From: Piromyces finnis finn
Lineage: Eukaryota > Fungi > Neocallimastigomycota
NCBI GenBank assembly: GCA_002104945.1
Contig: MCFH01000012.1
Coordinates: 496,001-560,000, forward strand
DNA length: 64,000 nt
Reading direction: 5' to 3'
This document shows positions 41,306-49,510 of this stretch, piece after piece. Below the pieces are notes generated by a model. The model searched no databases. It saw nothing but the letters and a program-made list of their open reading frames with translations, and was not told the DNA's origin. The first letter of the stretch is position 1. The number at the start of each line of letters is the position of its first letter. A program made the position numbers and the translations under genes.

Positions 41306-43149
41306 TTTCTGTCTTGAATATTTATTTTATATTAAATTAAAATATATATATAAACCTATATTTAATAACAAAAAAGAAATAATCTGTTAATATCAAGCAG
41401 TAATTATAAACTTTTAATTTTTTTGTAAATTTTATTAAATTATTTCAAATTTCTAATTATCCATTTCTTAATTATTTATTCATTCATTTCTAATCATCTA
41501 TCTTCTATTTAACTCTTTTCTAATCATTTATTTATTTCTTTATATCTATTTCACCTATTCAATTATTTATCTATTCCACTTTATCAAATGTATAATTTTT
41601 TCTCTTTTTTTATATATTATTAAAAAAAAAAAAGATATATTTACAACTATACAACTTTAAATCTGAATGGAATGTATAAATAAATAAATAAATAAATTAG
41701 GTAATTTTTCTTTACTTCTATATATGACAATCTTTTAAAACTATATAAATAATCAATTATTAATAAAACGGTTTAAATTTAATATTTTAATATTTTATAA
41801 TAAAAATATGTAGATTTACTTTTTTTTTTTAATGCGTATTTATGTTTTTCTTTTTTTTTTTTTAAATTGACATTAATACTTTTTATTATTTTATTTTATT
41901 TTTTTTTTGTTCTGTTTTTATTTTATATTTTTATTTTTTTTATTTCAATAAAATTCAAAACAGTGAAAATAAAAAAATAAAAAAAATGTAAATTTTTATT
42001 TTTTTTTTTTTTTTTTTTTTGGATTTAGAAGGAAAAAAAATTTTTTTTTTACCTTTAAATTATTTTTTGTTGAACAATTAAATCAAATAAAACCATTCAA
42101 TTAAAATCAATTAAATCTAATATATTTACAATAAATTTACAATATATTAATTTATATAGTAATATATTGTTAATGAAATTATTTGACAATAATCGAGAAG
42201 ATAAAAAAAATTGCAAATGAATAAAATAAAAATCAATAAAAAAAGGCCTAAAATTTTTAATCAATTAATTAAAAAAATTTTATTTATTCATCCTCTAATT
42301 TTGATAAAAGAATAAAGGATGATCTATAATTAGGATTAGGATTGTAATAAGAAAGGATCTAGGTATTATCACAAATAATAATAATAGAAAGTAGATTGAT
42401 AAAAAGTAGAAATATAGCAATAGCAATAGCAATAATATAAAACAGTATTTTATGAATTCTTAATAGCTGCAGCAATTATGCAATAATTATACCCACTCCC
42501 ATTACTTTATCAATGTTATTTTTGTATTTATCAATGATTTATCAAACTTTTAAATAATTAAATGATAAAATTTATGTACATTATGATAATGTAATGCAAA
42601 TGTAAATGTAAATCATTCATTTGCTACATTTATATGCTACAAATGCATTTATCTATAATTTGATTGGTAGTTGAAATGTTTATACATTTGATTGGGGAAA
42701 AGTACTACACTATTTTTAAAGTTTACGTCATTTAATATATGAGAATAGTATATGTTTATATATTATTTTAATACTAATATTTCTATAATTTCATATATTA
42801 TAAATACTTTATTTTAAATTAAAATTTAAATTAAATTAATTAATGAGAATTTATGCAAACAAACAAAAATAAATAAATAGAAAGATGAATAAATAATAAA
42901 ATACAAAATATATAATTAATGTAACACGATATGTAGTAATATAATGTAATAGTAATTAATAATAATTAATAATAATTAGTTTTTTATTATATGTAATATT
43001 AATTAGTAATTAAATAATGTTTATTAATAATAAATATTAAGGTTTTTTAATAAATAATAAAAGAAATGAATTAATAAATCTATTTACCTTAATAAATAAT
43101 ATTAAATAATATTAAATATTAATTAATAATAAATATTAATTAATAATAA

Positions 43150-44000
43150 TAGTAATAATAATAGTAATAATAATAGTAATAGTAATAGTAATAGTAATAG
43201 TAATAGTAATAGTAATAGTAATAGTAATAGTAATAGTAATAGTAATAGTAATAGTAATAGTAATAGTAATAGTAATAGTAATAGTAATAGTAATAGTAAT
43301 AGTAATAGCAATCGGTAATAGTAATAGCAATCGGTAATAGTAATAGCAATCGGTAATAGTAATAGTAATAGTAATAGTAATAGTAATAGTAATAGTAATA
43401 GTAATAATAATAGTAATAGTAATAGTAATAGTAATAGTAATAGTAATAGTAATAGTAATAGTAATAGTAATAGTAATAGTAAAGTAATAGTAATAGTAAT
43501 AGTAATAGTAATAGTAATAGTAATAGTAATAGTAATAGTAATAGTAATAGTAATAGTAATAGTAATAGTAATAGTAATAGTAATAGTAATAGTAATAGTA
43601 ATAGTAATAGTAAATAGTAATAGTAATAGTAATAGTAATAGTAATAGTAATAGTAATAGTAATAGTAATAGTAATAGTAATAGTATAGTAATAGTAATAG
43701 TAATAGTAATAGTAATAGTAATAGTAATAGTAATAGTAATAGTAAAGTAATAGTAATAGTAATAGTAATAGTAATAGTAATAGTAATAGTAATAGTAATA
43801 GTAATAGTAATAGTAATAGTAATAGTAATAGTAATAGTAATAGTAATAGTAATAGTAATAGTAATAGTAATAGTAATAGTAATAGTAATAGTAATAGTAA
43901 TAGTAATAGTAATAGTAATAGTAATAGTAATAGTAATAGTAATAGTAATAGTAATAGTAATTAGTAATAGTAATAGTAATTAGTAATAGTAATAGTAATT
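43150..44000. repeat. ~850-bp (AGTAAT)n hexamer tandem array
   Basis: Nearly pure AGTAAT repeats with three 19-bp variant units (agcaatcggtaatagtaat) at ~43307-43363 and several single-base indels. It produces the spurious poly-Y, poly-L and IT ORFs. Confidence 0.95.
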
Positions 44001-45818: not shown

Positions 45819-46009
<191 letters not shown>

Positions 46010-46704
46010 AATTACAATTATAAACAATAAATAATGAATTACTGTAGTATTTATATTTAATTTTTACCAATTTAAAAAATAATAATATTATTAGTAATAT
46101 AATTTATTATATATATATTAAAAAATACCAAATAATAAATAATTAAATATATATTAGAAAAAAAAAAAAAACATAATCTTTTTTTAACTATTTTTTAATA
46201 TAATTTTATACTCTTATTATTATTGTGGTATTTTTTTAGTCTATCTTTTTAACTTAATAAAAAAATTTTGTAAAAAAAACTTTTGAAAATAAATAATAAT
46301 AATAATAATAATATGGGAAACTTTCATAAAATAAACAGTTTAATATGAAATAGTTAAAAATAATAGCAAAATAATATAAAAATATTATTAGAATTATTAA
46401 TAAATAGTATAGATAATAATATTAACAATGGATAATATGATGGTATGATATATATTTTTTTTTTATTCCGTTAATATAAAATTTATAAATGTAAATATAC
46501 ATATATAAAAAAAATATCATTTATATTATACTTTTATCTATGGTATAATTACCTTAATACAGCATATATAATAATAATATAATATATATTATATATATAT
46601 ATTATTTATCATTTTAAACTTTTATTATATATAAAAAAATAAAAAAATAAAACTTTTATTCATTTCAACAATTTTATTATTAAATATTCTATCTACATTT
46701 TTAG

Positions 46705-46745
46705 GTACGGTTTATAAGGTAAAAGCTGATTCTTATTTAAATGTT
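46705..46745 (+). pseudogene. Isolated N-terminal half of a bacterial-type SH3 (SH3b) domain
   Basis: After a ttttag acceptor the frame reads (G)TVYKVKADSYLNV, matching the SH3b start YxVxAxxxLNVR. It then breaks into T-rich sequence. Confidence 0.5.
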
Positions 46746-46765
46746 ACTTTTTTTTCATTTTTACT

Positions 46766-47497
46766 TAAAAAAAAATAATTGTATTATTTTCTGGCATAAG
46801 CATATTAACATTCATCTCACTTGATCTTTTGTAGTTTTTCATAAAACAACCTGCTAATAATTCAGGAGTTCCATTACTCTTACTAAATTGAGAAAGAGTT
46901 ATTGAACAACTTGATGTTTTATCATATTGAAGACCATTATCAAATTCATATTGACATTGAGTTTGAAAACTTTTATAATTTTATCCTTTACCACTTGCCC
47001 AATTCTTAATCATCGATCCTGAAATCCATTGAACAAGACCATAACTATTACTGCTATCCTTACTCTTTTTTTTCGGCACTGGGGTTAAGAGTAGATTCAT
47101 GTTCCATATTTCCGAGTAAACTACTAATAGCATTTTTGTTTCAACCTTTAACTGTAAAGAAATTATAAACTTTAGTAGCCACATCAATTTGAGTTTGTGT
47201 CCTAGAGGAGATCACTAAAATAAGTTGATAGACTTAGTTTTAAGTATTTTGTAGAGGCATAACCTCTATTAGTAACATACCAACCATAATTCCATGGATC
47301 AATACCAAAAACTTGAACGACAATATCTTTAGGTAATGGTATTTTGTGATGGACCAGTTCTACTTCATCTGTTGTTATAATGAAATTCTGACCATCTGTA
47401 GAGTAATTAAATAAGAAATATGTACATATCTTTTATAAAATTTTACCCAACCATTATTGGTAATAGTAGTGGAATATATATATTGATTATTTAATTT
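46766..47497 (-). pseudogene. Bacterial/phage-type SH3b-SH3b-phage tail lysozyme (Phage_lysozyme2-like) pseudogene
   Basis: Across frameshifts: ..TITNNGWVKFYKRYVHISYL (end of SH3b); SRTGPSQN..LPKDIVVQVFGIDPWNYGWYVTNRGYASTKYL (SH3b); QIDVATKVYNFFTVKG*NKNAISSLLGNMEHESTLNPSAE..SYGLVQWISGSMIKNWASGKG*NYKSFQTQCQYEFDNGLQY..ITLSQFSKSNGTPELLAGCFMKNYKR..AYARK*YNYF. This fits the GWSxNAIAGILGNMxxESxLNP..GxGLxQW..PExLAxxFxxNYER..RxxxAxxWY pattern. Stops at 47202-47204, 47141-47143 and 46981-46983. Confidence 0.82.
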
Positions 47498-49510
47498 TTT
47501 TCTCTTTCTTTAATAAGTTTTAAGAAAATTAAAATTAAATTGAACATAAAGTAAATTTAAAATATAATAATAAATTGAAACAACACATGTATTATATAAT
47601 AAAAATAAAAATAGTTATAATAAACATAATAGGAATAAGTCGCTTTTTTTTTTTAAACTTTTTTTTTTTTGTGTGTGGGTTAAATAAATATACACACCTA
47701 ACCCATATATAAACAATTTTTATAATCTAACCATCACAAAGCTAATTAAGTATATATAATACACTAAAAAAAAAAAGCCAAAAAATTTTTAAAATATAAA
47801 AAAGAAAACACATCATATATTACTATTTAATGATTTAGAAATATTATATTATATTTCTTTAATCTTAAAAGTTGAATTATCTCTTAAAAGACCATTAGTT
47901 ATTTCATTTCTAATAATCTTTATTTTTTTATATTCAAGTAATAGTATTTTGGGTAGAGATGAAAAAAATAATTCTTTTTTTTTATTGCTAATGATAGTTC
48001 CTACACTCATTTTTTTTCCATACCATTCATTCTTTTCTTTATTATGAAGTATGCTATTCAAAATGACTTTCACTTTATTATTTAGTAAAATTTCATTACA
48101 ACAACATTCTAATAACATTCTAATTAAAATTTATAACATCCTTCTTAAAGCATTTTTTATACTATTCTTTTTTTATCATTCTCTTTATCACATCATTTTT
48201 ATGATAATTTTAGGCAGAATAAAAAAAGGCCGTTTCCTTTTTTAATTTATTCCAATAAAAAAGTTTTATTTTTGTTTTTTATATTTAATTGCCTTTTATG
48301 CAAAATATTATTTATTAAAGTTTCTTTATTTTTTATATTATTTAAAGTTTTACATCCTCATTAGTAACTTTAATTAATAAATAAATGTTGAGTTTTTTTT
48401 TATGCAACCATTTCATTTATTCTCACCAATAATATTCATTCAATAGTATGATTAAAGTTACACAAAATATCTTTAATTTTCTATCTCATTTATTTTAATT
48501 TTTCTTATATTACATTATATTCTAATATATATCCATGCAATAAATTATTCATGTGAGAAAGTGATAACATTACTGAAAATCATCTTATTGCTTAGAATTG
48601 TGTTTAATAATTAATTTAATTTTAATTCAATTATTATATATATTAATGTATAATCATTAATATATAAGCATCCATTTAAAAGTTTAACATTTTTTATTCC
48701 AGATAAAAGTTTTTTAACGTGCTTTATATTTAGTAAACATCCACCATCCACACACCACTTTTATGCCAACAAAAGTAGTGCCATGCCTACTATCAGTCAA
48801 GGTAGAAGAACTTAAAATATATATTATCTATTGATGATTTACACTATGATTATTATTGTGTGTGTATGGTATTATTGTGTATAATACTATAGCTACACTT
48901 TATGTAACTATTATTCTTTTCAAGTGGTGGTGGTATAATACTAGCATTACAACCCAATAAATTTAATACATTTTAATACGTTTCAATACATACAATTTTT
49001 ATTGAAAGATGTCATCCAAAACGTTTAAAAACCAATTTCTAATAAAAAGTTTTTTTTTTAAATAATGATGTTAGTATTATTTCTTTTCTTTTTTTTAATT
49101 TCTATTCATAAAGTAGAGATAGTATAATTCCTTATTAAATATTCAGTGTTTTTATTCTTTCAATTACAAGGTAAATTACTGCTTTTTTCTTAAAATAAAA
49201 AGGACGGTTTATGCCATCATCAGCAGCAATATTCATTTTTTTTTCTCATTTTCATTTATGTTTCAAAGATTTTAATTTAATTTAAATATATTATAAAATA
49301 TATTACAATATATTCAGTTCAATGGATAATTTATATTAAACTTATTTTAATAATAAATGCTCAACTTGGCCTTCATTGAATTATTAATTCATTTACTTTT
49401 TATTTATACTATAATTATTTCATTCACCAACTTTAATTATTATGATTTATTTATATATTAATAATTCATTCATTGAATTATCATGACACGGAAAATGAAA
49501 AAAATTTAAA

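Follow-up and report, generated by a model that had tools for sequence, protein, structure and literature searches.

A probable inverted pseudogene of an SH3b-bearing, phage tail-type lysozyme in the anaerobic gut fungus Piromyces finnis

A decayed gene in the genome of Piromyces finnis appears to be the remnant of a secreted peptidoglycan hydrolase which was cut in two by an inversion. It lies in a stretch of 64,000 nucleotides of contig MCFH01000012.1 (positions 496,001 to 560,000, forward strand), which was analyzed as a whole and is called the window in the following; its own numbering is used. Sequence comparison confirmed that the minus strand at 46768-47500 holds a broken gene with two predicted SH3b domains followed by a phage tail lysozyme domain of the phi29 gp13 type (PF18013), while the former start and the signal peptide of the same gene are apparently found on the plus strand nearby. 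The relic is with high confidence a pseudogene unable to make the enzyme, an assessment which extends to the whole explanation including the inversion and the origin of the family. The proposed inversion is a new observation, which had been missed in a sequence-only reading of the same DNA.

The Lysozyme Domain

Three-frame translation of 46700-47560 on the minus strand revealed a chain of stop-free pieces leading to the stop codon of the gene at 46765-46767. In the direction of the gene, these comprise a piece at 47378-47509 with the SH3-like end '...NNGWVKFYKRYVHISYL', a piece at 47205-47432 containing '...GWYVTNRGYASTKYLK', a piece at 47144-47233, two pieces at 47063-47140 ('...LLGNMEHES...') and 46984-47073 ('...YGLVQW...') and a C-terminal piece of 71 aa at 46768-46980. 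The broken PF18013 catalytic domain, together with the stop codon, occupies 46765-47200 on the minus strand according to Pfam pieces, tblastn, frameshift-aware alignments and a profile match to PDB entry 3csr. In the Pfam search, Phage_lysozyme2 was matched by the piece at 47063-47140 with 22.6 bits (profile positions 16-39) and, collinear with it, by the piece at 46984-47073 with 16 bits (profile positions 42-69), each piece alone scoring below the Pfam cut-off of 28.2 bits. Neither the 71-aa C-terminal piece nor the SH3-like pieces gave a Pfam match. The Pfam check proposed earlier for both domain types was hence positive for Phage_lysozyme2 in two pieces, below the cut-off, and empty for the SH3-like part. 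In searches of the PDB with single pieces, piece F matched gp13 weakly (E 0.67) and piece B produced noise; the ESM Atlas search with piece B gave no usable match. As the relic pieces remain under the Pfam cut-offs, the family assignment rests on homology to intact relatives.

In a tblastn search of the window with protein OUM58434.1 of Piromyces sp. E2, three frames were aligned with a summed E of 5e-42. At least 16 homologues matched the lysozyme part in this way. With family members as queries that each score 112-133 bits on PF18013, E values of 1e-14 to 5e-42 were obtained over 46801-47224. The family profile matched the N-domain of phi29 gp13 (PDB 3csr) over its full length with an E of 1.8e-57. 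The phage tail lysozyme domain claimed from the sequence alone is thus borne out by the collinear Pfam pieces, by tblastn and by the 3csr profile. The same holds for the putative catalytic Glu in NMEHES, which had been described as retained: the Glu of the relic's 'GNMEHES' corresponds to E32, an invariant column of alignment A1 (14 family members), and this column is aligned to Glu45 of gp13. The GN..ES motif is kept in the relic. Glu45 is the suggested catalytic residue of gp13 (PMC10394673, citing Xiang et al., 2008).

The Predicted SH3b Domains

Ahead of the lysozyme domain, the minus strand carries a linker and a broken SH3b domain 2 at 47201-47400 ('...GWYVTNRGYASTKYLK'), placed by alignment to the SH3_3 domain of OUM58434.1, E2g2, P0032, and P0033. 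The C-terminal two-thirds of SH3b domain 1 ('KLNNQYIYSTTITNNGWVKFYKRYVHISYL') follow at 47401-47500, as delimited by frameshift-aware alignments and by tblastx with a Piromyces sp. E2 sequence (L001) and a fungal metagenome contig (L082); in terms of the E2 protein, this part begins with residue 47. For 47223-47429, alignment with the SH3_3 domain of OUM58434.1 gave 57.8 bits. Among the aligned intact relatives, SH3_3 (PF08239) was detected in E2g2 (42.8 bits), P0032 (57.5 bits, two stretches), P0033 (51.8 bits, domain 1), and P0034 (77.4 bits), and the relic would be a member of SH3_3 by homology to them. The two SH3b repeats that had been described would accordingly stand by way of the intact relatives. 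One correction applies to the first repeat: the minus strand lacks its initial 13 residues, which occur on the plus strand, within 46647-46745, behind the former start codon and the signal peptide.

The Proposed Inversion

The detached 5' end at 46647-46745 on the plus strand starts with the former start codon, now ATA, continues with a signal-peptide-like run and 'TVYKVKADSYLNV', and closes with the codons for '...LNV' in SH3b domain 1. Over its whole length it can be aligned with residues 1-34 of the two E2 genes (scores 66 and 80). It is the best match in the window to that N-terminus, and with each of 12 reference proteins it outscores every one of the 1374 background chunks of the window; a score of 66 was reached by none of 2000 shuffles. 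A tblastx comparison with L082 located the first 25 codons at 46671-46745, on the plus strand, and assigned the remainder to the minus strand from 47497 downward. Homology on the plus strand stops at 46745, and on the minus strand it stops at the stop codon of the gene (46765-46767), which is separated from the 'LNV' codons by no more than 19 nt. These 19 nt (46746-46764), directly after the stop codon in minus-strand reading, represent the left junction and a stub of the 3' UTR. At the other side homology ends at 47500, and the right junction (47501-47512) lacks about 12 codons corresponding to residues 35-46 of the relatives. Homology reaching residue 34 on the plus strand and resuming with residue 47 on the minus strand, with the stop codon adjacent, points to one gene that was cut twice and whose inner approximately 760 bp were flipped.

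The inverted segment would comprise roughly 46746-47505 (about 760 bp), with one breakpoint inside codons 35-46 and the other 19 nt past the stop codon. As a result of such an event, the promoter, the start codon and the signal peptide would have stayed on the plus strand and the remainder of the gene would have come to lie on the minus strand, with about 12 codons being lost at the break. Other damage to the copy comprises the change of ATG to ATA, three stop codons, four to seven frameshifts, the deletion of three codons and the replacement of invariant residues. At the breakpoints no inverted repeats were found, only AT-rich chance matches. The window showed no synteny with the Piromyces sp. 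E2 scaffold, which consists mostly of gaps, or with the 22-kb fungal metagenome contig, and no syntenic intact locus in the original orientation was found on these two sequences.

It is also conceivable, albeit unlikely, that no inversion took place and that two partial copies of a former convergent (tail-to-tail) pair are present, the plus-strand copy having lost everything past residue 34 and the minus-strand copy having lost or decayed its first 46 residues. Pairs of copies a few kb apart occur in E2 and in the metagenome contig, though in the same orientation, and the alignment with P0033 as reference ran on in frame to minus-strand 47513-47614, with a signal-peptide-like 'LFLFLL...CVVS'. 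Yet this stretch stays within the window background for the 12 references (fraction at or above it 0.005-0.78), whereas the plus-strand piece tops 1374 of 1374 background chunks each time. A decayed second N-terminus at minus-strand 47513-47614 was therefore rejected as indistinguishable from background, and the low grade of the two-copy alternative follows from this comparison. Moreover, the retained residues 1-34 and 47-296 are complementary, for which one break accounts while two independent deletions do not, and the divergence of the plus-strand piece (about 50%) is about equal to that of the body. The inversion of a single gene is thus preferred.

Decay of the Gene

In frameshift-aware alignments with three references, homology on the minus strand sets in at about 47500 (at 47491-47500, according to which reference is used) and extends as far as 46825. 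The identity amounts to 54% with residues 47-276 of the E2 protein and to 46% and 59% with the remaining references. In-frame stops at 47141-47143 (TGA), 47060-47062 (TAA), and 46981-46983 (TAA), the TGA replacing an invariant Trp (Trp17), are common to all three alignments. So are frameshifts near 47400, at 47053-47056 and, in the linker, near 47198-47213. An extra compensating pair of frameshifts near 47365 and at 47331-47337 is suggested by two of the references, which also resolve the shift at 47198-47213 into two events. In total there are at least four and probably six or seven frameshifts. Compared with alignment A1, the relic has lost the invariant Trp17 to the stop and carries Thr54>Ile, Pro55>Ser, and Glu122>Lys, and three codons ('LRI') are deleted inside its lysozyme domain. 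The former start codon has changed from ATG to ATA.

With invariant positions lost and no open reading frame left, the relic does not qualify as a working member of PF18013. Nor does it qualify as a secreted protein, the signal-peptide-like segment being located on the opposite strand behind a start that reads ATA. Several independent disabling lesions are present in a sequence that is identical in contigs of three runs, as expected of a pseudogene. The view of the relic as a dead copy, advanced before on the basis of its stops and frameshifts, is reinforced by the lost start codon, the inversion and the lost invariant residues.

The sequence was checked against contigs from three public runs of the same organism, originating from three studies. 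The first contig (X1), from DNA, covers 46658-47640 and spans both inversion junctions with 0 differences to the window. Its sample is possibly identical with the source data of the assembly itself. The left junction is spanned by X1 alone and the right junction by X1 and by an independent run (X2), whose contig covers 46869-47580, again with 0 differences. The third contig (X3) covers 46833-47469 with 0 differences. At 47864-48199 the depth of X1 is about 144 and that of X2 and X3 is zero, a pattern which suits transcribed islands and not DNA. Accordingly, 46833-47580 is a candidate transcribed stretch from the X2 and X3 contigs, whose label as RNA is guessed. The relic is possibly subject to low-level, unspliced transcription.

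A gene that is still alive, its breaks being long-read indel errors, introns or recoding, is barely credible on these data. One of the frameshifts does fall on a run of eight T (47065-47072), a typical site of long-read errors, and the body of the relic is covered by the two runs that were guessed to be RNA. Nevertheless, the three stops are base substitutions in conserved codons, such as the TGA for the invariant Trp, and compared with the assembly, the three read sets, each from a different study, show neither a differing base nor a joint. The position of the start codon and signal peptide on the other strand and the replaced invariant residues speak against a functional gene as well. Sequencing errors or introns as the cause of the breaks were rejected on the grounds of the read agreement, the substitution stops and the lost invariant residues.

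Intact Relatives

A phmmer scan with the 71-aa C-terminal piece returned 16 proteins, of which the best real matches were the neighboring Piromyces sp. E2 proteins OUM58434.1 and OUM58433.1. PF18013 was detected at 112-133 bits in all the matches that were scanned, accompanied by SH3_3 in two of them. The model of OUM58434.1 (PIROE2DRAFT_64411, 213 aa) is cut by a scaffold gap; the true open reading frame at L001:11350-12237 encodes 296 aa with a signal-peptide-like N-terminus, two SH3b domains and PF18013, and reaches 130.6 bits for Phage_lysozyme2 and 42.8 bits for SH3_3 in Pfam. The same layout is found in OUM58433.1 (PIROE2DRAFT_64410, L001:4381-5277; scaffold KZ151197.1), which contains one in-frame stop. 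The stop might reflect incipient decay of this gene too or, alternatively, an error in sequencing. In the annotated model the stop, which is located in SH3b domain 2, is removed as if it were an intron.

Further intact relatives with this architecture are P0032, P0033, P0034, and P0040, that of P0040 being deduced from full-length homology, as Pfam finds only its lysozyme domain. P0033 and P0040 (L082:699-1577 and L082:10001-10900) are situated 9 kb apart on the 22-kb metagenome contig Ga0216347_10003021, which has 20% GC. Around them lie CBM10-dockerin serpin genes together with a GH3 gene, by which the contig can be recognized as that of an anaerobic fungus. Judged by its gene content, this is a locus of an anaerobic fungus in which the lysozyme family is predicted to be alive.

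Piromyces finnis itself possesses intact PF18013 genes, namely BCR36DRAFT_583693 and BCR36DRAFT_583694 (L089:3521-4435 and L089:5611-6546; MCFH01000023.1). Each of them directly follows an open reading frame of 106-111 aa with a signal peptide and Cys-rich modules, and each pair is probably one gene split by annotation. The intact paralogs that had been anticipated thus exist, both in these two P. finnis genes and in the genes of the same architecture in E2 and on metagenome contigs. Among the best 120 of 185 matches, no P. finnis protein combining an SH3b pair with the lysozyme domain was found, so the annotated proteome of P. finnis seems to be without an intact copy of this architecture, though further copies may exist outside the annotation. 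Apparently, P. finnis has lost the SH3b-targeted version that is kept intact in Piromyces sp. E2 and other gut fungi. In these intact proteins, the enzyme is presumably anchored to peptidoglycan by its SH3b pair, and the catalytic domain would, by homology, cut the glycan strand by means of the equivalent of Glu45. The products of L001:11350-12237, P0033, P0032, and P0034 are candidates for testing whether rumen fungi attack bacterial walls.

Origin of the Family

A maximum-likelihood tree was calculated from 143 lysozyme domains, with the relic read with X at each break. The relic falls into a clade of 25 rows (ultrafast bootstrap 100, SH-aLRT 97), which unites it with all five named Piromyces proteins and 19 metagenome proteins and includes none of the 62 named bacterial rows. 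Those metagenome proteins of the clade that were inspected have a eukaryotic look, with signal peptides and N/K-rich sequence. The next starred set, its membership taken as drawn in the quick tree, contains 65 rows and adds 31 named bacterial rows of Bacillota (among them Clostridium, Enterococcus and the Lactobacillaceae). The closest bacterial domains, from Clostridium and other Bacillota, show 54-60% identity. The tree is unrooted, its bootstrap has not fully settled, and it does not name a donor. The terminal branch of the relic is long (0.93, compared with a median of 0.2), as unconstrained decay would give, which renders its basal place in the clade unreliable; this position may be a long-branch effect.

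Horizontal acquisition, as suggested earlier, is upheld by this well-supported clade free of named bacterial rows and by the predominance of Bacillota in the next set. The fungal clade is nested among Bacillota and the gene is embedded in genuine fungal DNA, as expected for a horizontal transfer. Bacillota or their phages would be the source from which the anaerobic gut fungi received the family, which would then have diversified within the fungi. The ancestral protein was probably secreted, with a signal peptide, two wall-binding SH3b domains and a C-terminal lysozyme domain of the gp13 type. An antibacterial role of the fungal clade is presumed from homology.

Genomic Context

The window is very AT-rich, with 13-37% GC per kb, about 15-25% as a general level and approximately 15-23% near the relic, whose base composition is that of the surrounding fungal DNA. 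The relic is flanked by a eukaryotic gene for a V-ATPase a-subunit and by an ankyrin-repeat gene. The open reading frame of the former corresponds to 533-538 kb of MCFH01000012.1, a contig of 994 kb in assembly GCA_002104945.1, which also encodes BCR36DRAFT_583694, a protein named as one of Piromyces finnis. Further copies of the lysozyme gene were not found inside the window.

Bacterial or phage contamination, or a misjoin of the assembly, might be suspected, as Bacillota and their phages are the typical carriers of the domain family, but its probability is negligible. The segment is situated in the middle of a 994-kb contig between the two eukaryotic genes and matches its surroundings in base composition, and contigs of short-read type continue from it into both flanks. 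In the tree it groups with Piromyces proteins and with none of the 62 named bacterial rows, and its relatives adjoin CBM10-dockerin genes. By contig position, neighbors and composition, contamination or a misjoin was excluded for practical purposes, and the relic can be regarded as fungal DNA, as had been supposed.

Two repeats were noted in the window. A (TAATAG)n microsatellite of about 860 bp extends over 43141-43999 with 95% matches; it yields a spurious open reading frame of 305 aa and has a GC skew of 0.885. A (TTA)60 run follows at 45823-46008, 2 kb beyond it.

Comparison with Known Systems

Mention of PF18013 having been transferred into P. finnis can be found in print, which makes the finding less new than had been assumed: Ciach et al. 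(bioRxiv 10.1101/2021.12.02.471044) reported the P. finnis protein ORX49608.1 as a phage-derived xenolog. The P. finnis paralogs are named phage tail lysozyme domain-containing proteins in UniRef as well.

The two E2 genes 64411 and 64410 resemble the relic in signal peptide, two SH3b domains and PF18013, with 46-59% identity over residues 1-34 and 47-276. Neither of them is inverted, the open reading frame of 64411 is intact and that of 64410 has its single in-frame stop, and they have no flanking genes in common with the relic. BCR36DRAFT_583693 and BCR36DRAFT_583694 share with the relic the genome, the catalytic domain (up to 55% identity) and the fungal clade; unlike the relic, they are intact and feature Cys-rich front modules instead of the SH3b pair. 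The N-domain of phi29 gp13 (PDB 3csr, 3ct5) belongs to the same catalytic-domain family, and an equivalent of its Glu45 is present in the relic. In contrast to the latter, gp13 is a tail-tip protein and has an M23 peptidase domain in place of SH3b. According to PMC10394673, the gp13-type family had no CAZy GH number yet, as functional data were wanting. In GH184, which resembles gp13 in structure, an equivalent Glu is used (PMC10394673).

Fungal muramidases with SH3-like wall-binding domains are established for the Ascomycota (2023, PMC10394673). They share with the relic the combination of such a module with a muramidase, a likeness of design, and they differ in belonging to another catalytic family and in having a single wall-binding domain. 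The nearest non-fungal catalytic domains, with 54-60% identity, are those of bacterial PF18013 proteins linked to LysM or SH3b domains (such as Clostridium gelidum psyc5s11_19320, P0055, and P0146). Unlike in the relic, the binding modules of bacterial PF18013 proteins are LysM, CHAP or M23 and mostly C-terminal; P0146, which looks bacterial, has three SH3b domains ahead of the lysozyme. For the SH3b pair, a word-based and length-limited search gave 31% identity as the highest value for a sequence of bacterial appearance. Hence, the description of the architecture as typical of Firmicutes applies to the types of domains, while in that search the SH3b pair itself was without a close bacterial relative.

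Taken alone, the relic is a dead gene and changes little. Nevertheless, it can serve as a marker that gene death, in addition to duplication, contributes to the turnover of the acquired phage-type lysozyme family in anaerobic gut fungi. An assay of any gp13-type member would be useful for a family without a CAZy number (PMC10394673).

The SH3b Pair on Other Wall-Cutting Domains

We tentatively consider, at somewhat less than even chances, that the relic is a casualty of a birth-and-death, domain-shuffling family in which an SH3b cassette specific to anaerobic fungi was joined to at least four to five different wall-cutting domains, the gp13-type lysozyme among them. If this were true, gut fungi would possess a modular secreted antibacterial arsenal from several transfers, which is so far undescribed as such. 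A search with the SH3b pair, followed by Pfam and PDB checks, identified a signal peptide and two SH3b domains before other wall-cutting domains in the metagenome proteins P0104, P0108, P0115, P0148, P0150, and P0153. The cassette precedes Amidase_2 in P0115, a GH24 Phage_lysozyme domain in P0153 and a weak glucosaminidase match in P0150. In P0104 it is combined with a domain matching PDB entry 4hz9 (E 7e-13), which bears the title 'putative cytoplasmic protein' and which we take to be a complex of a type VI secretion amidase effector (Tae4).
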